This document shows positions 8,373-57,067 of a DNA stretch of 64,000 nt, piece after piece. Below the pieces are notes generated by a model. The model was not told the origin of the DNA, did no database searches, and worked only from the letters and a program-made list of their open reading frames with translations. The translations under genes were made by a program, and so were the position numbers. Location of the stretch: positions 2,046,001 to 2,110,000 of the forward strand of contig OZ251227.1 in assembly GCA_965240325.2 (NCBI GenBank), written 5' to 3'. Source of the DNA: Rebecca billardiae RCC1528. Its lineage: Eukaryota; Protista; Haptophyta. How positions within the stretch are numbered: the stretch's first letter is position 1; each line of letters opens with the position of its first letter.

Positions 8373-9379
8373 ATTCTGGTGAACACTACAGCTTTAAACA
8401 ATTTTAATTCGTGACAAAGCCCTGGGAGACCCAGCTCCGACCCCCTTTAATTGGGTGTGACGTACTGCTGTCCCAAGTAATACCGGAGTAGGAATACGAA
8501 GAATGGGGCCTCAAACGTTTTTTGATTAGGCACGCCTCGGGAATCGAGAACGCACTTGGTTAATTTTTGCGCCAATTAAGGCACGCCTCGGGAATCGAAG
8601 CGCATGTGGTTAATTTTTGCGCGCGCCGCATAGAGATGTCGTTGCGATTCCCACAAATCTGGCGGCGATCTTAGCGGTACCCCCTTACCCAGTTCATACC
8701 GCCTATACAATACGGTAACGGTACGGACCTGGCGCGCCTCGCCGTGCACCCGCACGAGGCCACGCGCCCCGGCGCGCGCGCGCCCGCGGCCTCGCACCCA
8801 AACTGCGAGACGCCGGCAACGCTCGACGCGTGCCTCGCGCAGCGCGGCTGGCGAGCACGCTGAACGGCGTGGACGAGGCGCGCAACGCGGAGCGCCGCGA
8901 GGGTCACGCCGCGCGTCGAGCCGAACCGCGCGCGGCGCGCGAGGCCGCCGCGACCGACGCGGTCGCGCGCCATCTGGGCGTCCGGCGGCAGCAGCGCGCA
9001 CGACGTGCGGACTGCAGTTGCTGCACGTCGATGGCCGACGCGCGCACGCACGGCGTGATCGGTGCGTGCCGTTGCCGTGCCGCCGTGCCCGAGCGGCCGT
9101 GCGCAGCGACGACTGCATTGACTGCATCGACGCGCGCCTCGCTGGCGCCTCGGTGGGCCTTGCAGAACTGGGAGAGCCACGCTGCCGCACCTGGCTAATG
9201 GCTAAATCGCACACGCGACGCGCGAAGACGCGGCAGCTCGGATGATACCGTTAGTCAGCGCTGAACGGCCAACTCGTCTCATCGTCGTCGGGTCTGCCGG
9301 CCCTGGCAAGCTTTCGCGTCCTAGACGCGCTGTGTTCGACCAGCCCCACCGGGAAAAGGCCGCTAGGCCCCCGCTGTTT
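8373..9379 (+). repeat. Dispersed repeat A, internally deleted copy (inverted relative to 34176-35550)
   Basis: Reverse-complement match over about 1 kb, with 365 bp missing at the GGA junction (8725-8727). Contains a ~50-bp tandem pair GGCACGCCTCGGGAATCGA...GGTTAATTTTTGCGC at about 8528-8622. Confidence 0.9.
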
Positions 9380-26355: not shown

Positions 26356-27431
26356 GAGGCCACTTCACCGAAATCCAGGTTGGGGAGGATCTCCGCTGCA
26401 CTGGTGGGGAGGATGTCATCCTCCCCGCTCGCCACGGCTGGGGAGGATGTCCGCCGCGCTGTCCGGTCTTTCGCCGCTGACAAAACTTTCGAAAACGAAA
26501 GTCGCGCTATGGCGGACCCGGTGTTCCCGCCCGGCGGCGAAAGGGGCGCGGGGCCGGTGGCTCGCGATCCGAAGGGCAGTAGCTCGCGACCTCGCTTGGG
26601 CGGTGGCAGCGGCGCTGTGGCACGGCGTGTACCATCCGCGCGGCTGTGCGCGATCGCGCGGTCCCGTTCGTCGCCACGCCGCGCGCGACCGTTCACGCCA
26701 CAGTCTTTCCGCACTGGCATGCACCCGTTGCAAGCGCATGACGGCGGAGAGCTCAGAGAGCCCGTCACGCGCGTGACGACCGTGTGGGATGGGTTGTGCC
26801 GATATGAAGGCTGCCCTTCGTAGGCTTTCTGATGAGCCCATCCAACGTTCAGACCATTCCTAACTGCTGAAAGATGAGTCATCGCCTGCCACACGGCCAT
26901 GGAGTTGTGGACAGTACAGCAGCCGTCCATGATCCTCATGCCCGCCTCATGGGCCGGCGCGTGCCTCCCTGAACATGAAGACAAGCTGTACAACCCATCC
27001 CACACGGTCGTCACGCGCGTGACGGGCTCTCTGAGCTCTCCGCCGTCATGCGCTTGCGACGGGTGCATGCCAGTGCGGAAAGACTGTGGCGTGAACGGTC
27101 GCGCGCGGCGTGGCGACGAACGGGACCGCGCGATCGCGCACAGCCGCGCGGATGGTACACGCCGTGCCACAGCGCCGCTGCCACCGCCCAAGCGAGGTCG
27201 CGTGCTACTGCCCTTCGGATCGCGAGCCACCGGCCCCGCGCCCCTTTCGCCGCCGGGCGGGAACACCGGGTCCGCCATAGCGCGACTTTCGTTTTCGAAA
27301 GTTTTGTCAGCGGCGAAAGACCGGACAGCGCGGCGGACATCCTCCCCAGCCGTGGCGAGCGGGGAGGATGACATCCTCCCCACCAGTGCAGCGGAGATCC
27401 TCCCCAACCTGGATTTCGGTGAAGTGGCCTC
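26356..27431. mobile_element. Non-autonomous foldback/long-TIR element: 442-bp inverted arms, 192-bp spacer, flanking target-site duplication
   Basis: 26356-26797 is the near-perfect reverse complement of 26990-27431. TATTG lies immediately outside both ends (CTATTGG if the termini are trimmed by 1 nt). Confidence 0.9.
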
Positions 27432-27548: not shown

Positions 27549-27747
27549 CAGGGCTTTGAAAGATAATTATTCCCAGACTCCAAACTTCTCGATGCGAAAT
27601 TGGCGGTCGCATCTCTGCCTCGCGAGGCCACATCTCGGCGTCGTCGGCGAGTCGGCGAGGAAAAACAACGGGACAGCCGACGACAGGCGTACCTTCACGA
27701 GTTGCCGACGACCCTAGCCTGCGGGCCATCTTCGATCCGTGATCACC

Positions 27748-29351
27748 ATGGCGGACGCGCCCGCGGCTGCGACCCCAAAGAAGAGCAAAACCCGCCCGCC
27801 GGGCGTCTACAAGATCGAAAAGAGGGTGGAGGCCTACAAGGACCGCGTGAAGGCGCACAAGGTCGGACCCGGGACAAAGGGGACGCCGCTGCCCGCGAAG
27901 AAGCCGCCGACGATCATCGCGCTGTACAACTTCAAGGGTGGCGTTGGCAAGACGACCAACCTCATCAACATCGCAACGACGATGGCCGCGACAAAGCGGG
28001 TGCTGATCGTCGACGCCGATCCGCAGTGCAACGTCACCACCTTCTTCATCCCTTCTGTGGATGACGCGGCCGAGAAGGGTGCTCAGCCTGCAGGCGGCCC
28101 GGCTGATGGTCACGGCGATGGGGACGGCGGGGCCCCTGCGCCAGTGGCATCATCTTCGAGCGGCATCCGCGCGGCTGAGGACCCGCTGCCCGCGGGTGCT
28201 GTGGGCAAGCCGCACTCCATGGCGCAGATCGACAATGCCGTGCTCTACACGGAGTACGGCGTCGACGACCTCGACGTGCTGCTAGCTCCCGCGTTCGAGG
28301 GCGAGATCGCCGCGCTCGTGCCGCCAGACAAGTACCTCACTCCGGAGCCCATCGAGCTGGACGACGGCTCGGCATCGTGGCCTGCCCACAACCTGCTGCT
28401 CATCCCAGGCAGCCCGACCGTCGCGCTGCTCGAGCGCAGCATCGGCAAGGCCGAAGGCATGGACGCGCCCGTCAAACTGGGCGCGTTCCGCAAGCTGCTG
28501 CTGGCGTCCGCGGAGGTCACGGGCGCCGAGGTGGTGCTCGTCGACCTGGGCCCGTCTGCCTCGCCACTGAACATCGTGCGCGCTGCGCGCCCGCGCACGG
28601 CGCCCCATCCGGCGGGATCCGGCCAGCGCGTACGTCCGCCATCCTTGCGCACACTTCACCGCACAACCGTCTCACACTCGTGTGCCCACCGTGCGTGTGC
28701 GTCACATTGTGCTGTGGTTTCTGGCTGTGGCCATGATGACCGCCCTCCGACTGCGCGCAGTGCTTCCTCCTCTCGTGCGACTACATCTTGCCGCCGGTGT
28801 TCGCTGACTCGTACTCGACGTTCAGCATGCACAAGCTGCTGGTGTTCCTCGTGCCCGAGCTCAAGGCTGAGCACTCGAAGATCATCCGCGCGCAGGGCGA
28901 TGCTGGGCCGAACGGCAAGCTGCAGGGCGAGATCACCGCGCGGCAGCAGGAGCTCGGGTACGCGTTCAACCGGAAGATGCCGCGGCTGCTGCCGTTCATC
29001 TTCACCAACTACATAGCCGCGCAGAACAACGTGCTGCGGATCCAGCCCGCACGCTTCGTGGTGCTGGCGCAGAACATCTTGGAGCGGCAGGACGTGCTCA
29101 ACGCGAGCTCGGACCTCTTCCTCCCGCACAACGGCAGCATGACCCTGTGCCTCTGCAAGAACCTCGGCCAAGTGCAGGGCGCGTCGCTGTCAGCGGGCGT
29201 GGCTGCTGCTCACCTCACCGAGCAGCACTTGAGGGAGGAGCGCATCATGAATCCGGCCAAGAAGATCGCGCTGATGCAGATTACCTACGCTCGCAAGCGC
29301 TACGCAGCGTTCGTGGAGTGGCTGCTCGACGTGTGCGTCAGCGGCAAGTGA
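27748..29351 (+). CDS. ParA/Soj/MinD-family P-loop ATPase, copy 1 (472 aa). Exons 27748-28575 and 28761-29351
   Basis: Deviant Walker A YNFKGGVGKTT, VLIVDADPQCN, LLLIPGS, Walker B VVLVDLGPS. Intron 28576-28760 gives SPLNI|CFLLSCDYILPPVFAD. Lys-rich N-terminus PKKSKTR. Confidence 0.9.
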
Positions 29352-29667
29352 AGTCGTTGTCGAGAGTCTTCGATCACCGAATGCGCACGCATGCAGCAGT
29401 AGTCGTGCACTTCGTGCAGCGTGCAGCGCGCAGTGGTGCGTATACGATTTTCATCATCTACGTACTCCATATCGTCATTGTCATGTGATCCGGCTGATCC
29501 GCCTCGCCGTCAGCAGCAGACGAGACATGCAGAAACTCATCAGCAGATCGGATGATTGTCAGATCGATTCGACAGATCGCGCGCATCGATCGTACTTCGC
29601 GGCAATCAGCATATGCGGCTCAGACTGGGCAGCGCAGGGCAGCCTGCTGCGGCACCGGGGCACGTAG

Positions 29668-31806
29668 TCACAATAAGGCCTTCGGCGGCGGCGCTGCCGA
29701 ATCGATGCCGGCGCCAATCTCATCCCGGACCTGCCGCAGCTTGCGGTGCTCTGGGAGCAGGTGGTGCTCCGCCTCGAGCGCGCGCGCCGCCTCCCGCGCC
29801 ACGCGCGCGCCCTCCGGATCGCCGCACGCCATCAGCGCGAGGCCGAGGTTGGCGCGCGCAAACGCCGCGCGCCGATCGCGGCCGGCGCGCTCGAGCCCGT
29901 CCGCCGCGCGCGTGTGGAGCTCGGCGGCGGCGCGCGCGTCGCCCTGCGCGCAGAGGACGGAGCCGAGCGTATCGAGCGTGTCGACGGTGTCGGGCGCCTC
30001 GGCGCCGAGGCTCGCCTCCCGCCCGGCGAGCACGGCGCGCGCCAGGCCCTCCGCCTCCGCCAGCGCGCGCCCCGACTGCGCGAGCACGGCGCAGAGCGCG
30101 CCCATCGTCGCGTAGCACCGCGTGTCCTCGGCGCCCGCGCCGCCCTCGGCGCCGTACGCGCCCGCCCCCTCCTCCCCCGGCGGCGGCGCCGCGCCCGCGC
30201 CCGCCGGCGCCGCCTCGCGCGGCCCCTCGGCGCGCGCACGCAGCGTGTCTCTTAGGATGGCCTCCGCCTCGGCGAGGGCGCGCGGCTCGGCCGAGCCGGC
30301 GAGCGCGCGCGCGACCAGCTCGCGGCCCGCCAGCGTGAGCTTGTGCGCGGGCCCGTGCACGCGCTCGAGCGCGCTCAGGTTGCGCCGCGCGAGCGCCTTC
30401 GCCTCCGCGCACGCGCCGCGCGTGAGCAGGATGCGCGCGAGCGCGCCCCTCGACTCGAGGGTGGACGGGTGATTCGCGCCGAGGCCGGCCGCCGCCTCCT
30501 TCTGCGCGACCGTGCGCCGCGCGAGCTGCTCCGCCTCGAGCAGCGAGCCGCGCTCGGCGTGGAGCACCGTGAGGTTGTGCAGCGTGCGCAGCGTCTCCGG
30601 CGCCTCCGCGCCCAGCTGGCGCACGCGCCCGTCGAGCACGCGGCGGTACAGCGCCTCGGTCTCACCGAGCGGCGCGCCCTCCGCGCGAAGGATCGCCAGG
30701 TTCTCGACCGAGGTGAGCGTGCTCGGGTGCTCCGCGCCGAGCCGCGCCTCCTTGCCCGCGACGGCGCGCGAGTAGAGCGCCTCCGCCTCGGCGCGGTGCG
30801 CCGGGCCGCGCGCCTTGAGCAGCACCGCGAGGTTGTTCGCCGTGGCCAGCGTGTCTGGGTGCCCAGGCCCCAGCTCCGGACTCGCCTCGCGTGCCGCCAG
30901 CTCAGCGCGGTACAGCCGCTCCGCCTCCGCCACGTGGCCCAGCCGGCGCAGCAGGACGGCGAGCTTGTGCCGCAGCTTGAGCGGGCGCGCGGGCGAGCCG
31001 CTCGCCTCGAGCTCGCGCAGCGCACGCCGGCCGCACCCGCCGAGCCACTCGCGCAGCGCCGCGCCCACCGCCACGTTGAGCGCGTGGAAGCCCACCCCCG
31101 CCTGCACGGCCTCGCAGATGCTGCGCCGGTCCGTCGCGGAGGACGCGGCCGAGCGCTCGACGTCGACGCGCGAGAGCGCGGCGGCGATCGAGTCGAAGTC
31201 GTCGACGAGCGCGGTCTCGAACGCCCGGCGCGCCGAGCGCGGCATCGCGACCGAGAGCGCCGCGCCGCTCTCGACGGTGGCGTTGATCTCGAAGAGGCAC
31301 CACGCGCGCGTGAGCGCGAGCGGCGCGTGCCACGGCTCGAGGACGAGCACCGTCGTGCCGATGGCGTGCACGTTGGTCTGGAAGACGGCCGACCACCACT
31401 CGAACGGGCGCGTCGCGGTGTCCCACTGCGAGTTGGTCACGAGGTCGAGCCACCAGAACGCCTCGGCGGCGTGGCTGACGAAGCGCGTCGCGCGGCCGAG
31501 GTCGCCGGCGGAGCCAACGACGGTCGGCGTGCCATCCGCAGCCGGCGCATCCGCTGCCTGCCCGCCGTTCCCGCGCGCGAGCAGCTCGACGTACGAGCAG
31601 CGCGCGACGCGCGTGAGCGGCCGGATGAGCTCAAAGCACACGTCCTCGGTGCTGAGCGGCTCGCCGGCGCCGCGGGCCGAAGGGGGCTACTCCCACGCGC
31701 GGTGGGTGCGCGGCGGGCCTGGCTCGGGCGCACGCGCGCGGGCCATCTCCCGCAGCGCGCGCAGCACGCCGAGGCGAACGCCGCGTCTCTCGAAATCGGC
31801 CGCCAT
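29668..31806 (-). pseudogene. TIR/HET-like + kinesin-light-chain-type TPR gene, disrupted copy
   Basis: Relative to 42765-44972 it has a CAG>TAG stop at 31687-31689 and a 72-bp in-frame deletion at about 31470 that removes WGLAFGSLVEAL... Confidence 0.85.
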
Positions 31807-31969
31807 GCTGACGACGTCTCCAGTACAGGTCGCTGCGTCGTTTTTCGGACTGCTTCGTTTTTCGGACCCGGGCGATGGCGACAGTGGCTCGCTCATCGGC
31901 GGGTGCGTGGCGGGCGCGCCGCGGCAGGGCTGAGCAGCCTGTCGGCGCGTGGGGTGACGTGCCCGTCAC

Positions 31970-34175: not shown

Positions 34176-35550
34176 AAACAGCGGGGGCCTAGCGGCCTTT
34201 TCCCGGTGGGGCTGGTCGAACACAGCGCGTCTAGGACGCGACGGAGAAGCTTGCCAGGGCCGGCAGACCCGACGACGATGGGACATCCGGGCTGCCGCGT
34301 CTTCGCGCGTCGCGCGTGCGATTTAGCCATTAGCCAGGCGCGCAGCAGCGCGGCACTCTTCTGCAAGGCCCACCGAGGCGCCAGCGAGGCGCGCGTCGAT
34401 GCAGTCGTCGCTGCGCACGGCCGCTCGGGCACGGCGGCACGGCAACGGCACGCACCGATCACGCCGTGCGTGCGCGCGTCGGCCATCGACGCGTGGTAGT
34501 CGTGCAGCAACTGCAGCTCCGTGGGGTTTTCCGCACGTCGTGCGCGCTGCTGCCGCCGGACGCCCAGATGGCGCGCGACCGCGTCGGTCGCGGCGGCCTC
34601 GCGCGCCGCGCGCGGGGCGGCTCGACGCGCGGCGTGACCCGCGCGGCGCTCCGCGTTGCGCGCCTCGTCCACGCCGTTCAGCGTGCTCGCCAGCCGCGCG
34701 CGCAGCTGCGCGAGGCACGCGTCGAGCGCTGCCGGCGTCTCGCAGTTTGGGTGCGAGGCCGCGGGCGCGCGCGCGCCGGGGCGCGTGGCCTCGTGCGGGT
34801 GCACGGCGAGGCGCGCCAGGTCCACAAACGGCTCGTCGCGCAGTTCCAGCGCGCGCAGCCCGGCGACGCGCGCGTCCCAGCGCGCGACGTGTTTGGACAG
34901 CGCGTCCGACATGCGCGCGCCGCCCGCGTCGCCCTCGCCGCGGTACCGGCGGATGAGAATGGCCAGGGCTGCACGCACGTTGGCGAATTGCGCGCACGCC
35001 GCCGCGCTCCGCCTCCGCATCTGCACGACACACGCCGCGTAGACCACGAACGAATCCAGCTCGTGCACGACATCGTCAGCCGACGTGGCCATGTCGGGCC
35101 GACGGCGGCCAAAGTCACGACTCACGATGTGCCCCTCCCGACCGGGGACCCGGCGTCGTCCGGCAAAAGCGGCAGGCGCGGCGCTTCCGTACCGTTACCG
35201 TATTGTATAGGCGGTATGAACTGGGTAAGGGGGTATATACCGCTAAGATCGCCGCCGCCAGATTTGTGGGAATCGCAACGACATCTCTATGCTGCGGCGC
35301 GCGCAAAAATTAACCACATGCGTTCTCGATTCCCGAGGCGTGCCTTAATTGGCGCAAAAATTAACCAAGTGCGTTCTCGATTCCCGAGGCGTGCCTAATC
35401 AAAAAACGTTTCAGGCCTCGTTGTTCGTATTCCTACTCCGGTATTACTTTGCTCAGCAGTATTGGGCACCCAATTAAAGGGGGTCGGAGCTGGGTCTCCC
35501 AGGGCTTTGTCACGAATTAAAATTGTTTAAAGCGCTGTGTTCACCAGAAT
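34176..35550 (-). repeat. Dispersed repeat A, longer copy, containing ORF 34094..35125 of unknown function
   Basis: Reverse-complement match to 8373-9379 plus an extra 365 bp (about 34824-35188). Confidence 0.9.
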
Positions 35551-36867: not shown

Positions 36868-38823
36868 GCAGCACGAGCTGGACCGCGCGCACATCTATTT
36901 TGCTCTCGCCCGCCGGTCTCGAGTCTCCACTGCTTGACTGGCGCATCGAGCCGCGCGCTGACCGTGCCCGAGTCCGAGAGTCGGAGCGGCTCTGGCGCTC
37001 ACGAGGGCGGATGCCTGACTGCCTGACTAACGAGAGCCACCGAGGCTGATGGCTGCGAGCCGCGGCGAGTCCGCCGGTAACGATGGCGAGGTGGCATATA
37101 TATATATGCTACGGGCGACGCCGTGCTGGCCCCTCTCACCCGTGCTCGCAGTCGCCCTCCGGCCGCTCCGTAGTCGGTCACACCGCCGCGGCGGCACCGG
37201 CGACGCGCGCCGACGGCGGCCCTTGCAGTTGTACTCGTACGCACTCGGCATCGACGCGGCGGCGAGGCTGCAGCGTGCTGAGTGTCTGAGTGACGGAGCG
37301 GTCGGGCAGTCGGTGGCACAGCTCGGCACCGCGGGCCCCCAATAACCAACTACGTTGGTTCAGTGGGTCTTATTCATGTTATGACGCAGAATTCACGGAT
37401 TATACTAGTAAGCAGTGACTGTGAGCACCGCGCAGAACGCGGTCATATTGAGTCGTAGCAGTCAGCACACGTATGTAGCCATATAGCGCGCGGCGACTAG
37501 CAGCATATATGTCCGACCGTTGGAGTGTAATAAGCCTGGATGCCTAGCGCATGTGAATGTCCGTGCTGCCGCAGCTGTAACAGGACACTAACAGGTGCGA
37601 CTCGGGTAAGCGTGAGCGGCCAAGAGCAACGATGATCGTGAATGCGTGGCCGACGGAAGGACAGCGCGCCTCCCGCGAGGCGCGAGCCCCGGGGTGGTGT
37701 GCACTGAAACGGAGACGAAAGGACTATGGGGGTACAGAGAAAAGTAAGCGCTGCGCCTCACTTGGGCTCGGGCATGCATGGGAGCTTGATGATCATCGCG
37801 GTGATATCATCCCGGTAGTCGCCCTCCTCCTTTCGCCATGCGGCCGACGCGCGCTCGATCAGCCTGCGATCAGCCGGGTCGGTCGGACGTCCGCGCGTCG
37901 CGCAGGGCGTCAGCAGCGCGGCAAGGGGCAGGCTCGCAGGCCAGGCAATGGCCACGTGCGCGAGCGCGCGCGCGCGAGCGCGCGCACGGCGATGGGCGCG
38001 GTCTGCGCGCGCACTTGGTGCACGCATTCGTGGCGCCCGATCTTGCGAGCAAGGGGGCGACGAGCGTCGCCGCCGCGTCTGATTGGAGGAACTCCCACAC
38101 GCCATCCGACGCGAGCACGATGAAGGCGTCCTGCTCCGAGAGCTTGCGCACGCTCACGTCCGGCTCAGCCGTCACGCCGATGCGCTTGACGCCGTGGTCG
38201 CCGATGGATCGCGACATGGCGAGGCCCGGCGCGGTGTGCTGCGAGTCGAGGTAGACGCGCGCGGGGCCGCCCCAGTCCTCGGGCGGCGAGACGAACCCGC
38301 CATGCTTTTTGATCCGCGCGAGCTCCTCGGGCAGGTCGGGCTTGTGGTCGCGGCTCAGATCGTGGGCCACGACCTGGCCCTTGCGCTTGCCGTGCGAGGC
38401 GAGCACGGCGCGCGAGTCGCCGCAGCACGCGGTGTACAGCACGTCCTCGATGAGCAGGATGACGGTGGCGGTCGTGCCCGACGCCTCGGCGTCGATGCTC
38501 CCGCGCTCCAAGCCGAGCAGCTCGTCCACGCGCACGAACGACTCCTGCAGCGCGCGCTCGGGCTCGTCGAAGAGCGCCGGGTGGTCCTCGAGCAGCGCCT
38601 GCAGCGTGTGCGCGACAAACTGCGAGCACTCGGCGCCGCTCAGCCCTGCGGGCGGGCGCGCGGGGCGGCGCGCATGAGCGAGCGCGCGCGCGCCGCGCCG
38701 CGCCGCGCCGCGCCGCGTCGCCCCGCACGCACCGTGCCCGTCGAAGACTGCAAACATGGCCGCGGCCGGGTTGCCGGCAAACGGGTAGGACACGAGGCCG
38801 CGGTCCTGGTTGATCTTGCCCGC
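36868..38823 (-). pseudogene. Inverted duplicate of 49516-51522 containing a 5'-truncated PP2C gene (coding part 38823-37758, two introns retained) and its downstream region
   Basis: Reverse-complement identity. The copy starts abruptly at AGKINQDRG and lacks exon 1 and the start of exon 2. Confidence 0.9.
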
Positions 38824-40253: not shown

Positions 40254-40691
40254 CGGTAGGGTGAGTGAAGCCCAAGTCGCGCCAAGTGAGCAACCGTGAT
40301 CCCGATTTCGGTGCAAGGGTGGTGATGAACAGTTGGTCCGATGCGTCCTTCATAGATGAACAGGCGGTTGCGAAGCTGTACATGTACAGTTGATGACTTA
40401 AAGAATATCACTTTCGTAACTGATGTATGATAGGCTTCGTTAATTGTCATCGATGGGTTGTATATATATATATATAATACCCGTCTTGTAGGGGGCTGGG
40501 GCAGGACGGGTGGATTCCCAGACTCCAAACTTCTCGATGCGAAATTGGCTGTCGGTCGCATCTCTGCCTCGCGAGGCGACGACATCTCGGCGAGTCGGCG
40601 AGGACAAAACAACGGGACAGCCGACGACAGGCGTACCTTCACGAGTTGCCGACGACCCTAGCCTGCGGGCCATCTTCGATCCGTGATCACC

Positions 40692-42298
40692 ATGGCGGAC
40701 GCGCCCGCGGCTGCGACCCCAAAGAAGAGGAAAACCCGCCCGCCGGGCGTCTACAAGATCGAAAAGAGGGTGGAGGCCTACAAGGACCGCGTGAAGGCGC
40801 ACAAGGTCGGACCCGGGACAAAGGGGACGCCGCTGCCCGCGAAGAAGCCGCCGACGATCATCGCGCTGTACAACTTCAAGGGTGGCGTTGGCAAGACGAC
40901 CAACCTCATCAACATCGCAACGACGATGGCCGCGACAAAGCGGGTGCTGATCGTCGACGCCGATCCGCAGTGCAACGTCACCACCTTCTTCATCCCTTCT
41001 GTGGATGACGCGGCCGAGAAGGGTGCTCAGCCTGCAGGCGGCCCGGCTGATGGTCACGGCGATGGGGACGGCGGGGCCCCTGCGCCAGTGGCATCATCTT
41101 CGAGCGGCATCCGCGCGGCTGAGGACCCGCTGCCCGCGGGTGCTGTGGGCAAGCCGCACTCCATGGCGCAGATCGACAATGCCGTGCTCTACACGGAGTA
41201 CGGCGTCGACGACCTCGACGTGCTGCTAGCTCCCGCGTTCGAGGGCGAGATCGCCGCGCTCGTGCCGCCAGACAAGTACCTCACTCCGGAGCCCATCGAG
41301 CTGGACGACGGCTCGGCATCGTGGCCTGCCCACAACCTGCTGCTCATCCCAGGCAGCCCGACCGTCGCGCTGCTCGAGCGCAGCATCGGCAAGGCCGAAG
41401 GCATGGACGCGCCCGTCAAACTGGGCGCGTTCCGCAAGCTGCTGCTGGCGTCCGCGGAGGTCACGGGCGCCGAGGTGGTGCTCGTCGACCTGGGCCCGTC
41501 TGCCTCGCCACTGAACATCGTGCGCGCTGCGCGCCCGCGCACGGCGCCCCATCCGGCGGGATCCGGCCAGCGCGTACGTCCGCCATCCTTGCGCACACTT
41601 CACCGCACAACCGTCTCACACTCGTGTGCCCACCGTGCGTGTGCGTCACATTGTGCTGTGGTTTCTGGCTGTGGCCATGATGACCGCCCTCCGACTGCGC
41701 GCAGTGCTTCCTCCTCTCGTGCGACTACATCTTGCCGCCGGTGTTCGCTGACTCGTACTCGACGTTCAGCATGCACAAGCTGCTGGTGTTCCTCGTGCCC
41801 GAGCTCAAGGCTGAGCACTCGAAGATCATCCGCGCGCAGGGCGATGCTGGGCCGAACGGCAAGCTGCAGGGCGAGATCACCGCGCGGCAGCAGGAGCTCG
41901 GGTACGCGTTCAACCGGAAGATGCCGCGGCTGCTGCCGTTCATCTTCACCAACTACATAGCCGCGCAGAACAACGTGCTGCGGATCCAGCCCGCACGCTT
42001 CGTGGTGCTGGCGCAGAACATCTTGGAGCGGCAGGACGTGCTCGAGGAGAGCTCGGACCTGTTCGTCCCGCACAACGGCAGCATGACCCTGTGCCTCTGC
42101 AAGAACCTCGGCCAAGTGCAGGGCGCGTCGCTGTCAGCGGGCGTGGCTGTTGCTCACCTCACCGAGCAGCACTTGAAGGACGAGGGCATCAACAAAAATC
42201 CGGCCAAGCAGATCGCGCTGACGCAGATTACCTACGCTCGCAAGCGCTACGCAGCGTTCGTGGAGTGGCTGCTCCACGTGTGCGTCAGCGGCAAGTGA
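40692..42298 (+). CDS. ParA/Soj/MinD-family P-loop ATPase, copy 2 (473 aa). Exons 40692-41519 and 41705-42298
   Basis: Same motifs and intron as copy 1. N-terminus PKKRKTR is NLS-like. Confidence 0.9.
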
Positions 42299-42764
42299 AG
42301 TCGTTGCGAGTCTTCATCACCGAATGCGCACGCAGGCAGGCAGTGATCGAGCAGCGTGCAGCGCGCAGTGGTTGCCTGGTTGGTACGATTTTCATCTACT
42401 CCATCTCGTCATTGTCATGTGATCCGGCTGATCCGCCTCGCCGTCAGCAGCAGACGAGACATGCAGAAACTCATCAGCAGCAGATCGGATGATTGTCAGA
42501 TGATCATCATCGACAGATCGATCGCATCACGCATATCGATCATCGATCGTACGCGCGTTACTGTGTGTCTTTGTGCAGTGTTGGATGGCGTCAATCACGC
42601 CTTAACCAAGTGTGCACGTTAAAACATAGTAAACTGCTGTAAAGTGTCGTAATATTATTCGCGGCAATAATCATCGGCACGACTGTGAGCATAATTGCAT
42701 AATAGTAAATAGGCTCCGGTCCTGGGCAGCGCAGGGCAGCCTGCTGCGGCACCGGGGCACGTAG

Positions 42765-44972
42765 TCACAAGGCCTTCGGCGGCGGCGCTGCCGAATCGAT
42801 GCCGGCGCCAATCTCATCCCGGACCTGCCGCAGCTTGCGGTGCTCTGGGAGCAGGTGGTGCTCCGCCTCGAGCGCGCGCGCCGCCTCCCGCGCCACGCGC
42901 GCGCCCTCCGGATCGCCGCACGCCATCAGCGCGAGGCCGAGGTTGGCGCGCGCAAACGCCGCGCGCCGATCGCGGCCGGCGCGCTCGAGCCCGTCCGCCG
43001 CGCGCGCGTGGAGCTCGGCGGCGGCGCGCGCGTCGCCCTGCGCGCAGAGGACGGAGCCGAGCGTATCGAGCGTGTCGACGGTGTCGGGCGCCTCGGCGCC
43101 GAGGCTCGCCTCCCGCCCGGCGAGCACCGCGCGCGCCAGGCCCTCCGCCTCCGCCAGCGCGCGCCCCGACTGCGCGAGCACGGCGCAGAGCGCGCCCATC
43201 GTCGCGTAGCGCCGCGTGTCCTCGGCGCCCGCGCCGCCGTCGGCGCCGTGCGCGCCCGCCCCCTCCTCCCCCGGCGGCGGCGCCGCGCCCGCGCCCGCCG
43301 GCGCCGCCTCACGCGGCCCCTCGGCGCGCGCACGCAGCGTGTCTCTCAAGATGGCCTCCGCCTCGGCGAGGGCGCGCGGCTCGGCCGAGCCGGCGAGCGC
43401 GCGCGCGACCAGCTCGCGGCCCGCCAGCGTGAGCTTGTGCGCGGGCCCGTGCACGCGCTCGAGCGCGCTCAGGTTGCGCCGCGCGAGCGCCTCCGCCTCC
43501 GCGCACGCGCCGCGCGTGAGCAGGATGCGCGCGAGCGCGCCCCTCGACTCAAGGGTGGACGGGTGATTCGCGCCGAGGCCGGCCGCCGCCTCCTTCTGGG
43601 CGACCGTGCGCCGCGCGAGCTGCTCCGCCTCGAGCAGCGAGCCGCGCTCAGCGTGGAGCACCGTGAGGTTGTGCAGCGTGCGCAGCGTCTCCGGCGCCTC
43701 CGCGCCCAGCTGGCGCACGCGCCCGTCGAGCACGCGGCGGTACAGCGCCTCGGTCTCACCGAGCGGCGCGCCCTCCGCGCGAAGGATCGCCAGGTTCTCG
43801 ACCGAGGTGAGCGTGCTCGGGTGCTCCGCGCCGAGCCGCGCCTCCTTGCCCGCGACGGCGCGCGAGTAGAGCGCCTCCGCCTCGGCGCGGTGCGCCGGGC
43901 CGCGCGCCTTGAGCAGCACCGCGAGGTTGTTCGCCGTGGCCAGCGTGTCCGGGTGCCCAGGCCCCAGCTCAGGACTCGCCTCGCGCGCCGCCAGCTCGGC
44001 GCGGTACAGCCGCTCCGCCTCCGCCGCGTGGCCCAGCCGGCGCAGCAGGACGGCAAGCTTGTGCCGCAGCTTGAGCGGGCGCGCGGGCGAGCCGCTCGCC
44101 TCGAGCTCGCGCAGCGCACGCCGGCCGCACCCGCCGAGCCACTCGCGCAGCGCCGCGCCCACCGCCACGTTGAGCTCGTGGAAGCCCACCCCCGCCTGCA
44201 CGGCCTCGCAGATGCTGCGCCGGTCCGTCGCGGAGGACGCGGCCGAGCGCTCGACGTCGACGCGCGAGAGCGCGGCGGCGATCGAGTCGAAGTCGTCGAC
44301 GAGCGCGGTCTCGAACGCCCGGCGCGCCGAGCGCGGCATCGCGACCGAGAGCGCCGCGCCGCTCTCGACGGTGGCGTTGATCTCGAAGAGGCACCACGCG
44401 CGCGTGAGCGCGAGCGGCGCGTGCCACGGCTCGAGGACGAGCACCGTCGTGCCGATGGCGTGCACGTTGGTCTGGAAGACGGCCGACCACCACTCGAACG
44501 GGCGCGTCGCGGTGTCCCACTGCGAGTTGGTCACGAGGTCGAGCCACCAGAACGCCTCGGCGGCGTCGGCCGAGCCTGCGGCCTCGGCGGCCGCCTCCAA
44601 CGCCTCGACGAGCGAGCCAAACGCCAGCCCCCACGCGTGGCTGACGAAGCGCGTCGCGCGGCCGAGGTCGCCGGCGGAGCCAACGACGGTCGGCGTGCCA
44701 TCCGCAGCCGGCGCATCCGCTGCCTGCCCGCCGTGCCCGCGCGCGAGCAGCTCGACGTACGAGCAGCGCGCGACGCGCGTGAGCGGCCGGATGAGCTCAA
44801 AGCACACGTCTTCGGTGCTGAGCGGCTCGCCGGCGCCGCGGGCCGAAGGGGGCTGCTCCCACGCGCGGTGGGTGCGCGGCGGGCCTGGCTCGGGCGCGCG
44901 CGCGCGGGCCATCTCCCGCAGCGCGCGCAGCACGCCGAGGCGAACGCCGCGTCTCTCGAAATCGGCCGCCAT
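42765..44972 (-). CDS. TIR/HET-like N-terminal domain + kinesin-light-chain-type TPR repeats (735 aa, intact, intronless)
   Basis: FVSHAWG, FWWLD, VLVLEPW, LTRAWCLFEI. TPRs of the LGP.HPDTL.TANNLAVLL..G...EAE.LY.RA type. Confidence 0.85.
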   Translation of the reverse strand: MAADFERRGVRLGVLRALREMARARAPEPGPPRTHRAWEQPPSARGAGEPLSTEDVCFELIRPLTRVARCSYVELLARGHGGQAADAPAADGTPTVVGSAGDLGRATRFVSHAWGLAFGSLVEALEAAAEAAGSADAAEAFWWLDLVTNSQWDTATRPFEWWSAVFQTNVHAIGTTVLVLEPWHAPLALTRAWCLFEINATVESGAALSVAMPRSARRAFETALVDDFDSIAAALSRVDVERSAASSATDRRSICEAVQAGVGFHELNVAVGAALREWLGGCGRRALRELEASGSPARPLKLRHKLAVLLRRLGHAAEAERLYRAELAAREASPELGPGHPDTLATANNLAVLLKARGPAHRAEAEALYSRAVAGKEARLGAEHPSTLTSVENLAILRAEGAPLGETEALYRRVLDGRVRQLGAEAPETLRTLHNLTVLHAERGSLLEAEQLARRTVAQKEAAAGLGANHPSTLESRGALARILLTRGACAEAEALARRNLSALERVHGPAHKLTLAGRELVARALAGSAEPRALAEAEAILRDTLRARAEGPREAAPAGAGAAPPPGEEGAGAHGADGGAGAEDTRRYATMGALCAVLAQSGRALAEAEGLARAVLAGREASLGAEAPDTVDTLDTLGSVLCAQGDARAAAELHARAADGLERAGRDRRAAFARANLGLALMACGDPEGARVAREAARALEAEHHLLPEHRKLRQVRDEIGAGIDSAAPPPKAL

Positions 44973-44988
44973 GCTGACGACGTCTCAT

Positions 44989-45013
44989 TACCCCCATATT
45001 CAATATGGGGGTA
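44989..45013. other. Perfect 12-bp-stem hairpin at the duplication breakpoint
   Basis: TACCCCCATATT-C-AATATGGGGGTA. Confidence 0.9.
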
Positions 45014-45046
45014 CTATCACGCCTTAACCAAGTGTGCACGTTAAAG

Positions 45047-45798
45047 GCCAACCGGTCCAGACCTCAGGATTATCCTTAACCTGCACGCCAGTGGGCGGCC
45101 CACTGGCGTGCAGGTTAAGGGTTTCGTCAGGTTGGCGCGCGTGTGGGGCGACGCTCCCGCCGCCACCTCGCTCTCGCCTTCCGCCGCCAGGGCGAGGCCG
45201 CGCGAAGTCCAGTAGATCTTCCGATGGGACGCAGCGGGGCGGTAGCGAAGCGGTGAACTACTGTCGCTTGCGCGTGGCGCAGCGCTTCGCGCCCTCGCAC
45301 CTCGACGGTCAGCTGCAGGCCCGCGCGAGCGCGAGCCGGTGTGCCGCCGCCACATTCAGCCAGAGACATGCCGCGCCTTGCCTGCCGAGGCAGCGAAGAG
45401 GCACGCACGTGAAGCCGCTGGGCGCCATGGCGCGCGCCCATGACCGTACTGTCACATGGCTCACGCCGTCCTGGGATGCGCGCCTCGGGTTGCGCTCAGC
45501 GCGCGCATACTTTGCGGGGACGACAGCACGGCTGAAGCCGAGAGGCGGCGCACACGCCCGTGCGGGCTCAAGGCGCCGAGAAGATGGTCAGACGCGAGTT
45601 GCCCGGCGCAGGGCGGCGCAGAAAGGCCCTATGCCTCTGCCCGACCGCGTGCGCCATCGCCGCGTGCACGTCTACGACCGCGGCGGCGCGGCAGCGGGCG
45701 GCGCCTCGCGGCGGATGGCTGTGGCGGGCGCACGCGGCGGGTTTTGAATTTTTCTCATTTTCCGAGTTTCCCAAATCCTGAGGTCTGGACCGGTTGGC
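45047..45798. mobile_element. 752-bp non-autonomous TIR element (25-bp perfect TIRs) with an internal 47-bp perfect palindrome at 45074-45120
   Basis: GCCAACCGGTCCAGACCTCAGGATT at 45047-45071 and its reverse complement at 45774-45798. It interrupts the motif CACGTTAAAACATAGTAAACTG that is intact at about 42615-42636. Confidence 0.85.
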
Positions 45799-49026: not shown

Positions 49027-50586
49027 ATGCTGTCGTCCGCTGCGCCGGCGCACCCGCCGTTGTCGCAGCGGCTCGCAGAGGGCCTGACGAACAGCTTCCG
49101 GCAGCGCCGGCTCACCCTCGATGGCATCGACACCAGCGAGCTCAAGGAAGTCCGCGCCAAGCACGCTGCTGAACATGACGACAAGCCGAAGCCGAGCTCG
49201 CGCCGAATGAGCTTGAGGTGAGGCGCGTGGGCCACGCGCTGCGCCCGTGCGCGGCGGGAGGCCAGGCTTCGCTCGGTGCAGGAGAGCGGCCGGGGACGAG
49301 GTCAGCGGGCATGCGCAGCGCCCGATCCCCCCGCGCGGTCCAGCGCGTGCTCACGCGCGCATTGCGCACGACCTTGCCGCGCGCGCGCGCGCAGCCCCGA
49401 GATGGTGACGGGCTGGCTCTCCCACGCACCGCCCGTGGAGGAGCTCTTCCCTCGCAGCGTGGTGGGCACCTTCAGCTGCCACGGCACAGAGCCGGGCAGG
49501 CGGCCCGGCGCGCCCGCGGGCAAGATCAACCAGGACCGCGGCCTCGTGTCCTACCCGTTTGCCGGCAACCCGGCCGCGGCCATGTTTGCAGTCTTCGACG
49601 GGCACGGTGCGTGCGGCGCGGCGCGGCGCGGCGCGGCGCGGCGCGGCGCGGCGCGCGCGCGCTCGCTCATGCGCGCCGCCCCGCGCGCCCGCCCGCAGGG
49701 CTGAGCGGCGCCGAGTGCTCGCAGTTTGTCGCGCACACGCTGCAGGCGCTGCTCGAGGACCACCCGGCGCTCTTCGACGAGCCCGAGCGCGCGCTGCAGG
49801 AGTCGTTCGTGCGCGTGGACGAGCTGCTCGGCTTGGAGCGCGGGAGCATCGACGCCGAGGCGTCGGGCACGACCGCCACCGTCATCCTGCTCATCGAGGA
49901 CGTGCTGTACACCGCGTGCTGCGGCGACTCGCGCGCCGTGCTCGCCTCGCACGGCAAGCGCAAGGGCCAGGTCGTGGCCCACGATCTGAGCCGCGACCAC
50001 AAGCCCGACCTGCCCGAGGAGCTCGCGCGGATCAAAAAGCATGGCGGGTTCGTCTCGCCGCCCGAGGACTGGGGCGGCCCCGCGCGCGTCTACCTCGACT
50101 CGCAGCACACCGCGCCGGGCCTCGCCATGTCGCGATCCATCGGCGACCACGGCGTCAAGCGCATCGGCGTGACGGCTGAGCCGGACGTGAGCGTGCGCAA
50201 GCTCTCGGAGCAGGACGCCTTCATCGTGCTCGCGTCGGATGGCGTGTGGGAGTTCCTCCAATCGGACGCGGCGGCGACGCTCGTCGCCCCCTTGCTCGCA
50301 AGATCGGGCGCCACGAATGCGTGCACCAAGTGCGCGCGCGGACCGCGCCCATCGCCGTGCGCGCGCTCGCGCGCGCGCGCTCGCGCACGTGGCCATTGCC
50401 TGGCCTGCGAGCCTGCCCCTTGCCGCGCTGCTGACGCCCTGCGCGACGCCCGGACGTCGGACCGACCCGGCTGATCGCAGGCTGATCGAGCGCGCGTCGG
50501 CCGCATGGCGAAAGGAGGAGGGCGACTACCGGGATGATATCACCGCGATGATCATCAAGCTCCCATGCATGCCCGAGCCCAAGTGA
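49027..50586 (+). CDS. PP2C/PPM-family protein phosphatase. Exons 49027-49217, 49395-49606, 49699-50329, 50481-50586 (alternative start 48937)
   Basis: KINQDR, FAVFDGHG, SGTTA, CGDSRAVL, DHKPD, GLAMSRSIGD, LASDGVWEF, RDDIT. Three GT..AG introns keep the frame. Confidence 0.93.
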
Positions 50587-51528
50587 GGCGCAGCGCTTAC
50601 TTATCTCTGTACCCCCATAGTCCTTTCGTCTCCGTTTCAGTGCACACCACCCCGGGGCTCGCGCCTCGCGGGAGGCGCGCTGTCCGTCCGTCGGCCACGC
50701 ATTCACGATCATCGTTGCTCTTGGCCGCTCACGCTTACCCGAGTCGCACCTGTTACAGCTGCGGCACGGCACCGGCGGACATTCAAACTCACATTCACAT
50801 GCGCTAGGCATCCAGGCTTATTACATCACTACACCAACGGTCGGACATATATGCTGCTAGTCGCCGCGCGCTATATGGCTACATACGTGTGCTGACTGCT
50901 ACGACTCAATATGACCGCATCATACACAGTTATACACTGCTTACTAATAGTGTTCCGTGGACTGAATCCGCGTCTGACTGAGTCTGATGATAAGACCCAC
51001 TACTGAATAACCAACTACGTAGTTGGTTATTGGGGGCCCGCGGTGCCGAGCTGTGCCACCGACTGCCCGACCGCTCCGTCACTCAGACACTCAGCACGCT
51101 GCAGCCTCGCCGCCGCGTCGATGCCGAGTGCGTACGAGTACAACTGCAAGGGCCGCCGTCGGCGCGCGTCGCCGGTGCCGCCGCGGCCGGTGTCACGGGT
51201 GTGACCGACTACGGAGCGGCCGGACTCGGGGCGACTGCGAGCACGGGTGAGAGGGGCCAGCACGGCGTCGCCCGTAGCATATATATATATGCCACCTCGC
51301 CATCGTTACCGGCGGACTCGCCGCGGCTCGCAGCCATCAGCCTCGGTGGCTCTCGTGTCAGGCAGTCCGAGGCATCCGCCATCGTGAGCGCCAGAGCCGC
51401 TCCGACTCTCGGACTCGGACTGGCACGGTCAGCGCGCGGCTCGATGCGCCAGTCAAGCAGTGGAGACTCGAGACCGGCGGGCGAGAGCAAAATAGATGTG
51501 CGCGCGGTCCAGCTCGTGCTGCCCGGAC

Positions 51529-51675: not shown

Positions 51676-54648
51676 TCAGATGGACGGAGCTCCGAACACG
51701 ACGAACGGCGCCCAGTGGCGAATGCGGAAGATGCGCGAGCGGTCGTCATCAGTCTCGCGCTTGGTCCTGTGAAGCAGCTCACTTAAAGTTGCTCGCATCA
51801 GGCCTGCAATATCCACGTGATGCGCGTCGCCGCCCACATCGGCAGCTTGGAGGCTCTCAGCCAGCCGCTGGTACAGCTCCTCCATCATGTCGCAGGTCTT
51901 GCTGTCACTGACGGGCCACAGCGAAGCGATGAGCGTGCTGCAGCCCGCGGAGAGGAAGGCGCGCGCGATGCCGATCAGCCCCTCCGAGCTCAGCTCGCCG
52001 CGGAACGTGTCGCACGCGCTTAGCACCATGAGCTGCATCTCTCGCAGGTCGAGAGACTCCACGTCCGCCATCCCCAGCATCGCCTCGTCGTAGCTGGAGC
52101 CAGCCAGGTGCAGGCCTGTCGGCGAGCCGTGCACGGCGAAGTGCACAAAGTGTGCGCGCGCGAGGTGCTCCATGAGCGCGGGCTTCGTCACCTGCTCGCC
52201 CTTCAGCAGCGTCACCTCCAGCCTGCTCGCCACGGCCGCCTTCGAGTCCAAGAGCTGGCTCACGGCGCGCGCCTCGGTATGCGCTTCGAGAAGATCGTCC
52301 AGCGCCTCGCCCACCACGTCGCCCACGGCGAGCTGCTTCGAGAGCTGCTCCCGCTCAGCACGCTCGAGGTAGCGCACCACCTTCCGCGCGCCGCCGTCGA
52401 CCGCCATCGCCTCCACCCACACGCACCAGCTCCTCTTGCCGCGCACGCCTCGCCTCGCCTCCTCCACGTCCTCGTTTGTCTGCAGCCGCCATGGCAGCTC
52501 GTAGCCGGAGTAGTCCTGCACGCCCGCGACGAGGGCGCGCTGAACGGAGTCGTCCTGCGCGCGGGCAGCGCGGCTGGCAGCCCGGTGCGCCTCGAGCTGC
52601 AGCAGCGCGCCAACCGACGGCGCGACGCTCAGCGCGTGGCGCTCCACCAGGTACTTGCCCTCCGCGTCGAGCAGCGCGGCAAACGGCAGCGCGTGCAGGG
52701 GGCCATCTGGCAGCAGCACGAGCCTCTCGCGCCCCATCAGCGCCTGTGCCAGCGGCTCGACGAGCAGCTCGTGACACCGCCGCAGCAGCGCCTTCGCCTC
52801 CGCATCGGCTGCATCTGCGTCATCGCGACGGCGCTTACCCCTCGTTTGTGGCAGCCCCACCACCCGCTCGCAGTCAGAGACACGTGCGCCCATGCGCACA
52901 GAGGCCCTCACGCACAGGCGGCCGTGGTCGCCCGCTGACTGGCCGCGGCTGCTGAGGATCGCACCGCGCGTGTCAGCCACGAGTGTGCCCAGCGACTGCT
53001 CGCCCAGCTCAAGCTTGTGCAGCAGCGGTGCCAATCGCGGGTCTGGCCGCACCACCCACGCCAAGATGCTCGACTCGGTCACCTGCGAGAAGAGCACGAG
53101 GCAGGCTCGATGGCGCACAGCGTACTCGCGCATCTGCTGCCACGACGGCGCCGGCGGCAGCGCGCGCGAGGGGGCTGCGTTCATATCGGAGCCGCTCGAC
53201 GGCTGCTGCCAGTTCTGGCGCACGAGCAGGAGCGCGAGCGAGCGCGCTCGGCTGCGCTCGGCCGCCTCCAGCGCCTCTGCACCCCTCCCTCCCTCCACGA
53301 GCTCACGCTGCAGGCCATTCGAGGCAGCAACTGGCAGGCCGGTGTCCCCAAACGAGACGCGCGCTTGATCCGTGCTCAGTTCGACCCAGAGCGAATCGTA
53401 CACGGACAGAGCGGCCTTGAACTCGTCAGCTGCGCGCTCGTGCTGCCCGAGGCTGCTGTGCGCCCTGGCAAGGTTGCTCAGCGCATTGCCCTCGCCTTGC
53501 ATGTACCCAATCTCGCGGCTGATGGCCAGCGCCTTTTTGTGGTGCTCGACGGCGCGCTCGTACTGCCCAAGGCTGAAGTACGCGCTGCCCAGGTTGGTCA
53601 GGTCGCTGCCCTCACCCCTTCTGTCGCCAATCTCATGGCTGATGGCCAGCGCCTGCTTGAGGTGCTCGATGGCTGACTCGTACTGCCTGAGGCCGCTGAA
53701 TGCTATGCCCATGTTCCCCAGCGCACTGCCCTCGCCCTGCCTGTTACCGCTATCACGGCTGATGACCAGCGCCTGCCTGTGGAGAGCGATGGCGCACGCG
53801 TACTGCTTGAGACAAAAGTACGCGTTGCCCAAATTGACCAGACGGCTGCGTTCACCCTGCTTGTCGCCGATCTCGCGGCTGATGGCCAGCGCCTGCTCGT
53901 GGTACTCGATGGCGCGCTCATACTGGCCGAGGCTGCGATACGCGTTGCCCAGGTTGCCCAGGCAGCTGCTCTCGCCCTGCCTGTTGCCGGTCTCGCGGCT
54001 GATGGCTAGCGCCTTCTCATGGTGATCGATGGCGCGCTCGTACTGGCCGAGGCTGAAGTACGCATTGCCCAGGTTACCCAGATCGCTGCCCTCGCCCAGC
54101 CTGTCACCAATCTCACGGCTGATGGCCAGCGCCTCCTTGTCGTGCTCTATGGCGCTCTGATACTGGCCGAGGCTGAAGTACGCGTTGCCCAGGTTACCCA
54201 GGTCGTTGGCCTCGCCCCGCCTGTCGCCGATCTCTCGGCTGATGGCCAGCGCCTGCATGAGGTGATCGATGGCTAGCTGATACTGCCCTAGGCTACGGTA
54301 CGCGCTGCCGAGGTTGCCCAGCACATTGCCCTCAATCTGCTTGTCGCCGATCTCACGGCTGATGGTCCGCGCCTGTATGAGATGCTCGATTGCGCACTCG
54401 TACCGCCCAAGGCTGTCATACGCGTTGCCCAGGCTACTCAGCACACTGCCCTCGCCACGCATGTCGCCAATCTCGCGGCTGATGGGCAGTGCCTCCTCGT
54501 AGTGCTCGATGGCGCGCTCGTAAAGCCTGAGGCTTAAGAGGGCGTTACCCAGGCTGCTCAGCACGCTGCCCTCGCCCTGCCTGTCGCCGATCTCGCGGCT
54601 GATAGCCAGGGCGTGCTCCAGAGCCTCCACACGCGAACCGCCTTCCAT
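51676..54648 (-). CDS. TPR-CHAT protein (ten 40-aa TPRs + CHAT caspase-like protease), TTC28-like architecture
   Basis: ALAISREIGD..GEG..LGNLGNAY.SLGQY repeats, EALEAAERSRARSL, LPDGPLHALPFAAL, HFAVHG (catalytic His), VLSACDT (catalytic Cys), EGLIGIARAFLSAG..LIASLWPVSD, HWAPFVVFG. Confidence 0.93.
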   Translation of the reverse strand: MEGGSRVEALEHALAISREIGDRQGEGSVLSSLGNALLSLRLYERAIEHYEEALPISREIGDMRGEGSVLSSLGNAYDSLGRYECAIEHLIQARTISREIGDKQIEGNVLGNLGSAYRSLGQYQLAIDHLMQALAISREIGDRRGEANDLGNLGNAYFSLGQYQSAIEHDKEALAISREIGDRLGEGSDLGNLGNAYFSLGQYERAIDHHEKALAISRETGNRQGESSCLGNLGNAYRSLGQYERAIEYHEQALAISREIGDKQGERSRLVNLGNAYFCLKQYACAIALHRQALVISRDSGNRQGEGSALGNMGIAFSGLRQYESAIEHLKQALAISHEIGDRRGEGSDLTNLGSAYFSLGQYERAVEHHKKALAISREIGYMQGEGNALSNLARAHSSLGQHERAADEFKAALSVYDSLWVELSTDQARVSFGDTGLPVAASNGLQRELVEGGRGAEALEAAERSRARSLALLLVRQNWQQPSSGSDMNAAPSRALPPAPSWQQMREYAVRHRACLVLFSQVTESSILAWVVRPDPRLAPLLHKLELGEQSLGTLVADTRGAILSSRGQSAGDHGRLCVRASVRMGARVSDCERVVGLPQTRGKRRRDDADAADAEAKALLRRCHELLVEPLAQALMGRERLVLLPDGPLHALPFAALLDAEGKYLVERHALSVAPSVGALLQLEAHRAASRAARAQDDSVQRALVAGVQDYSGYELPWRLQTNEDVEEARRGVRGKRSWCVWVEAMAVDGGARKVVRYLERAEREQLSKQLAVGDVVGEALDDLLEAHTEARAVSQLLDSKAAVASRLEVTLLKGEQVTKPALMEHLARAHFVHFAVHGSPTGLHLAGSSYDEAMLGMADVESLDLREMQLMVLSACDTFRGELSSEGLIGIARAFLSAGCSTLIASLWPVSDSKTCDMMEELYQRLAESLQAADVGGDAHHVDIAGLMRATLSELLHRTKRETDDDRSRIFRIRHWAPFVVFGAPSI

Positions 54649-56964: not shown

Positions 56965-57067
56965 GCAGTACAGTTTACAAATAACCTACAATATGTTTTA
57001 ACGTGCACACTGTTGAGTGTTGGTTTTAAAGGCGGTGATTGATGACGCCATCCAACACTGCACAAAG
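56965..57067 (-). repeat. Short dispersed repeat, inverted diverged copy of about 42569-42636 and 45016-45045
   Basis: The reverse complement reads CTTTGTGCAGTGTTGGATGGCGTCA...AGTGTGCACGTTAAAACATA. Confidence 0.75.

Follow-up and report, generated by a model that had tools for sequence, protein, structure and literature searches.

The duplicated cassette

The window, the whole 64-kb stretch of DNA that we analysed, contains a 4.3–4.5 kb cassette twice, 13 kb apart and in direct repeat (self-BLAST and pairwise alignment). Each copy pairs a spliced gene for a ParA-type ATPase (+ strand) with a TPR gene that converges on it from the − strand. The flanks outside cassettes A and B are unrelated to each other, and the DNA hosting the cassettes is GC-rich.

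27569–31820: cassette copy A, ParA on + and TPR on −, convergent (self-BLAST, alignment with 40514–44986)
27748–28575, + strand: ParA copy A exon 1, 276 aa (Pfam AAA_31 1.8e-14, CbiA 5.5e-13; translation)
28576–28760, + strand: ParA copy A putative intron, 185 bp, GT..AG (from reading frame and homology)
28761–29351, + strand: ParA copy A exon 2, 196 aa and stop (alignment, homology)
29668–31806, − strand: TPR gene copy A, broken (alignment)
40514–44986: cassette copy B, direct repeat of A (self-BLAST, pairwise alignment)
40692–41519, + strand: ParA copy B exon 1 (alignment)
41705–42298, + strand: ParA copy B exon 2, 197 aa and stop (alignment)
42765–44972, − strand: TPR gene copy B, intact, 735 aa (N-terminal domain and TPR_10/TPR_12 repeats)

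Both ParA copies are intact, encoding 472 aa in A and 473 aa in B. Exon 1 comprises, in order, a basic N-terminal extension, a deviant Walker A motif, a DxD motif, a low-complexity insert and Walker B. The Walker A sequence is KGGVGKT in both copies, which fits the deviant form KGGxGK[ST] that marks the ParA clade of SIMIBI NTPases in the parts of a family preprint considered here (Li, Burroughs, Aravind, bioRxiv 10.64898/2026.10.19.760177). VDADPQ (DxD), VLVDLGP (Walker B) and FTNY (the N of an [NT]KxD remnant) are also present in both. The intron position is supported by homologues, in which SCDYILPP follows directly on the Walker B region, and the 185-bp intron sequence is identical in A and B. 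We searched and folded the spliced gene exon by exon, with a full-length relative (P0003) as structural proxy. The P0003 model matched the ParA/Soj fold (Z 25–27; against HpSoj 6iub, Z 26.7 and rmsd 2.7 over 261 residues), and the exon 2 model, built on the copy B exon (pLDDT 93), carries C-terminal elements matching ParA/Soj. A Pfam scan returned no ParB match among the window ORFs scanned.

The two TPR genes are ~1% diverged, with a pair dN/dS of ~0.1–0.25. Copy A is disrupted by a stop at codon 40 (31687–31689) and, near 31469, by an in-frame deletion of 72 bp. Pfam gave no name for the N-terminal domain encoded by the TPR gene, which may be TIR/HET-like. The first 290 aa resemble eukaryotic clusters that are themselves unnamed (haptophyte, chlorophyte, diatom; feature score 0.95–0.96). 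A gene for a TPR-CHAT (caspase-like protease) protein of 990 aa lies 7 kb from cassette B (51676–54648, − strand), with 120-bp tandem TPR units and a Pfam CHAT match (1e-46).

The surrounding region is pieced together from local duplications and fragments of repeats. An inverted repeat with 442-bp arms (26356–26797 and 26990–27431; 99.5% identity, 192-bp spacer) ends 138 bp before cassette A; it may be a foldback element or a template-switch product, and may be related to the cassette duplication. Directly past the end of cassette B we observed a 47-bp near-perfect palindrome (45074–45120) and a short inverted repeat (44987–45016). Both adjoin an AT-rich repeat that recurs in the B spacer, and together they are possibly a transposon end. 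Other inverted segmental duplicates pair 36868–38823 with 49516–51522 and 8373–9379 with 34176–35550 (87–95% identity, many indels).

Homogenised core and divergent tail

Alignment of the two cassettes divided the ParA genes and the DNA beyond them as follows.

27663–29099 (B: 40607–42043): homogenised tract, 1 difference in 1,437 bp, 0 at ~576 neutral sites
29100–29330 (B: 42044–42277), + strand: divergent ParA tail, 11 amino-acid changes, 1 inserted codon, 1 silent change
29232–29276 (B: 42176–42223), + strand: cluster of 6 substituted codons and the insertion, aa 434–448 (alignment, exon 2 model)
29352–29625 (B: 42299–42722): 3' spacer shared by both convergent genes (alignment)
42556–42720: AT-rich insertion, mostly B-only, 42% GC (alignment, repeat matches)

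The sole difference in the homogenised tract is at base 27786 (S13R), so the original prediction that the copies are near-identical over exon 1, the intron and early exon 2, save one S/R change, was correct. None of the 576 neutral core sites (synonymous, intron and 5' UTR) differed, compared to 12.6 expected from the synonymous divergence of the TPR gene, 2.2% (P = 4e-6). The contrast in differences between core and tail was likewise strong (P = 2e-11, Fisher; tail boundary picked after the data were seen). Because an identical intron is not explicable by protein constraint, these data show statistically that the core owes its identity to recent gene conversion or to an equivalent recombination, which supports the earlier proposal that conversion homogenised the ATPase core.

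The tail comprises the last 83 codons of ParA. Every tail change listed in the original prediction was recovered by alignment. The substitutions from A to B, in copy A numbering, are N390E, A391E, L397V, A425V, R434K, E435D, R437G, K444Q, M448T and D466H, and M439 in A is NK in B through one 3-bp insertion that keeps the frame. The lone silent change is CTC/CTG at L395. We counted 13 nonsynonymous bases over 189.5 N sites (pN 0.069) and 1 synonymous base over 59.5 S sites (pS 0.017). The tail spectrum is transversion-rich (4 transitions to 10 transversions, with 7 of the 14 changes C<->G) and differs from that of the TPR gene, which is transition-rich at 17:6 (P = 0.015). Self-BLAST of the window matched only A and B to the tail, with no third close copy. 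A reverse-transcriptase-driven, adenine-directed mutation process was considered and dropped, the tail changes being mostly C<->G and not at A.

The divergence peak is not confined to the coding tail. It runs on through the non-coding spacer, where the first 244 bp hold 9 substitutions and 12 indels between A and B (21 events). Tail pN was 6.9%, compared to 3–4% substitutions and many indels in flanking non-coding DNA (P 0.02–0.27, Fisher). The 5' flank (27569–27662) has also diverged, with 4 indels in 94 bp. The original prediction mentioned neither of these diverged flanks nor the breakage of TPR gene A. The insertion in the B spacer matches repeats at 56992–57067 and 45016–45045 and is a candidate barrier to conversion.

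An assembly or polishing artefact would give a similar mosaic if the core had been collapsed to one consensus or if the tail differences were errors, and the tail is covered by no public reads. The 1% divergence of the TPR genes was preserved, as was one difference in the core, which makes collapse unlikely. Errors would not be expected to keep the frame, as the tail differences do with their one 3-bp insertion, or to avoid conserved columns. The only public run with ParA DNA partly covers the core at depth 2–3 and leaves the tail uncovered; its low-depth contigs are nearly identical to the core, with the B base at 27786, although their independence from the assembly is uncertain. On balance, we consider an artefact very improbable. 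One contig of this run (X1; depth 2.7) carries a third variant, K44R at 27878, which is possibly an error. S13R and K44R are both nonsynonymous and both fall in the basic N-terminal extension.

Constraint and selection on the tail

The original prediction took the excess of nonsynonymous over silent changes to suggest diversifying selection. Our tests of this rest on two sequences and 14 base changes. Under neutrality, ~3.5 of the 14 would be silent, compared to the one observed (P(<=1) = 0.06–0.12, binomial), and a spectrum-aware neutrality test of the same skew gave P = 0.095. Silent changes are few partly because third positions are ~90% G/C. Maximum-likelihood codon models of the tail alone gave dN/dS of 2.4–4.1 (P = 0.10–0.34 against 1); over all tail-alone variants the estimates were 2.0–4.1, and P rose to at most 0.46 once the complex M-to-NK codon was removed. 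The point estimate exceeded 1 in all of these models, and no test on the tail alone rejected dN/dS = 1 at P < 0.05. Strong purifying selection (dN/dS 0.25) was rejected (P <= 0.004), and a dN/dS of 0.46, the value for a paralog pair of another eukaryote, was weakly rejected (P = 0.005–0.047). These data argue against ordinary purifying selection on the tail. The prediction holds to that extent; its further step, dN/dS above 1, is not established, and the 13:1 skew is statistically compatible with drift.

With the TPR gene as a clock, the tail reached P ~0.001 under equal codon frequencies. Under MG-F3x4, F3x4 or F61, which account for the GC3 of 0.88–0.95, dN/dS was 1.2–1.7 (P = 0.2–0.67), and F3x4 and F61 by themselves gave 1.2–1.5 (P = 0.34–0.67). 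We did not accept the significance obtained with NG86 and the equal-frequency TPR clock (P ~0.001), as it was gone under F3x4 and F61 and the mutation spectra differ. Because the tail is transversion-rich and the TPR gene transition-rich, the tail and spacer appear to be older than the TPR gene, and the borrowed clock is therefore probably too slow for the tail. When the tail was split by family conservation, its variable half gave dN/dS of 3.3–7 (P 0.02–0.19 by model), or 2.0–6.2 with the TPR clock (P <0.001–0.12). This variable-half signal is the best evidence for diversifying selection and is borderline.

We then related the changes to family conservation and to structure. A profile search recovered >1,100 clusters of relatives, and in an alignment of 108 family members conservation was lower at the changed tail positions than at the unchanged ones (P = 0.005). 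The conserved half of the tail therefore remains under constraint. Six of the 11 changed codons and the insertion lie within 15 codons (P = 0.08 for clustering), at positions 434–448. In the exon 2 model this stretch runs from the last part of a short helix through a loop into the beginning of the terminal helix, and it is hypervariable across the family. A sequence search against the PDB gave no usable residue-level alignment of exon 2 to Soj. By secondary-structure order, the 434–448 loop would be an insert at about the position of K247 in HpSoj, where four lysines including this one bind DNA (PMC6393308); this would place the loop near the DNA-binding face of ParA.

Diversifying selection is a less probable reading of this pattern than the one we favour. 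The two genes would be anti-virus or anti-mobile-element ParAs in which DNA-facing loops at 434–448 were favoured to differ and conversion was kept from the tail, with the ATPase core still homogenised. The 13:1 ratio, the variable-half estimates, the clustering of changes and the predicted place of the loop at HpSoj K247 are consistent with it, as are the neighbouring TPR and TPR-CHAT genes. A divergence peak amid conversion is also a textbook sign of selection (PMC3924837). Against it, significance in the tail required that codon bias be ignored or a clock borrowed, and the non-coding spacer diverges to an equally high peak. The loop charge is nearly the same in both copies (4 K/R compared to 3), several tail changes are conservative (R/K, E/D, L/V, A/V), and A and B do not differ in the helix that corresponds to HpSoj K227/K230.

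Another explanation is decay of copy A along with its broken TPR partner, in which unselected tail changes would have arisen before the core was overwritten. The stop and 72-bp deletion in TPR gene A fit such a history, and B outscores A by 5.5 bits on the family profile. However, ParA A is intact, its differences from B avoid conserved columns, and the TPR pair still has a dN/dS well below 1. Polarised on the closest homologue (P0001), both copies carry derived residues: at positions 425, 435 and 444 it is A that retains the homologue-like residue, which means that B has derived changes too. The tail therefore does not reflect one-sided decay of A, and we regard decay as very improbable. Derived states in both copies would also be expected under diversifying selection.

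The reading that we favour, by a modest preference over all others taken together, is that the tail is an unconverted older block under weak constraint. The two-gene cassette was duplicated within the region, as its two copies show, and the ParA copies were later made identical over 1.44 kb by gene conversion or equivalent recombination, as the core statistics show. The tract probably ended ~250 bp short of the spacer rich in indels and insertions, because conversion is known to halt at large indels and TE insertions (PMC3924837), and the last 83 codons and the spacer would retain the older divergence. Within the tail, conserved structural positions stayed fixed, while loosely constrained surface positions, mainly in the 434–448 loop, would have drifted at roughly the neutral rate or a little above it. 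The original prediction had proposed a mosaic of conversion and selection. Its conversion of the core stands, and for selection guarding the tail there is a simpler rival in the indel- and insertion-rich spacer beside it.

Relatives and known systems

The closest named homologues of the ParA gene are in Emiliania (the best named match), Hondaea, Picocystis and Mesostigma. With Emiliania as the best match, the GC-rich host is probably a haptophyte-like alga. In an unrooted exon 1 tree, the gene grouped with these four apart from bacterial matches (100/99), with many rows being unlabelled metagenomic proteins assumed to be eukaryotic. One relative lies on an IMG/VR contig (25% identity). A metagenome scan with exon 2 gave no match, and an alignment-based scan gave only relatives at 22–41% over long stretches. 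The Emiliania and Hondaea homologues are single genes with housekeeping neighbours, which argues against diversifying selection on a specificity surface. Because of this arrangement, the ParA–TPR pairing is not conserved; neither Emiliania, Hondaea nor GCA_029979725.1 showed the linkage.

Close ParA pairs in other organisms gave tail dN/dS of 0.85 (core 0.61), 1.0–2.3 (core 0.31) and 0.46 (core 0.30), all from small counts, and a strain pair at ~2% divergence had zero tail changes. The ParA tail often evolves faster than the core, and dN/dS above 1 is no family rule. The last of the three pairs consists of two ParA-family paralogs of GCA_029979725.1 (L003:1753–3072 and L010:4005–5318), which are ~67% identical. 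A further family member (P0009/P0133; L008:1442–2716 and L009:3209–4507) lies on contigs that are dense in genes, mostly unknown ones, and lack introns (gene GC 46%), where a neighbour has a Gad2 domain; these contigs are possibly from a large DNA virus.

The gene has an intron, groups in a eukaryotic clade and, among the ORFs scanned, lacks a ParB or operon partner; it thereby fits the standalone clades Euk1 and Euk2, taken together, in the parts of the family preprint considered here. Those clades are placed there as sisters of bacterial STP lineages within ConB1. Those parts predict genome defence against selfish elements for eukaryotic standalone ParAs, and for bacterial ParA-effector systems they propose that fast-evolving C-terminal extensions intercept invader DNA (bioRxiv 10.64898/2026.10.19.760177); they report no selection test. 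Both proposals would agree with diversifying selection in the tail. Judging from fold, motifs and these parts of the preprint, the ParA copies probably act as ATP-dependent dimers whose C-terminal face binds DNA like bacterial Soj, and the dimers possibly act against invading DNA. An immunity-type role had originally been read from the skew. Such a role rests instead on what was seen of the preprint and on the neighbouring genes, not on the tail differences, and nothing points to a self/non-self or selfish-drive gene.

That these are immune ParAs, with a DNA-facing C-terminal loop diversified in an arms race with giant viruses or mobile DNA and conversion keeping the core interchangeable, is in our judgement unlikely, somewhat more so than diversifying selection as such. 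If true, it would provide molecular-evolutionary evidence for eukaryotic standalone ParAs as defence factors and would name the specificity loop; defence against selfish DNA is a prediction in the parts of the 2026 preprint considered here. Independently of its history, a natural pair differing almost only at 12 C-terminal positions is a ready comparison for DNA or partner specificity set by the tail. The pair also carries a caution: a 13:1 skew at ~90% GC3 next to a conversion boundary can appear without selection. Overall, our data suggest a real feature with an ordinary best explanation and a minority chance of an immune arms race.

Compared to known systems, the window's ParA shares with Euk1/Euk2, as far as the preprint was consulted, a standalone, full-motif ParA in a photosynthetic eukaryote, and differs from them in being duplicated in a TPR-gene cassette as a mosaic of conversion and divergence. 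With bacterial Soj/ParA (HpSoj 6iub, T. thermophilus Soj 2bek, DIP2308 3pg5) it shares the fold, as modelled for the full-length relative, the Walker A, DxD and Walker B motifs, and the N of the NKxD remnant. It departs from these proteins in lacking ParB and parS and in several additions: an intron, a long basic extension at the N-terminus, a segment inserted behind strand 2 and, ahead of the terminal helix, the helix-loop insert in which the changes cluster. The human red/green opsins (Fawcett and Innan 2011, PMC3924837) are likewise nearby duplicates with an identical intron and core and a local peak of coding divergence. In the opsins the peak stays within the functional exon, and the introns on either side of it have both been homogenised (PMC3924837), whereas in the ParA pair, a comparison of two sequences only, it extends into an indel-rich non-coding spacer. 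Because both the gene type and the pattern of conversion plus a divergence peak are already known, what is new is this particular pair.
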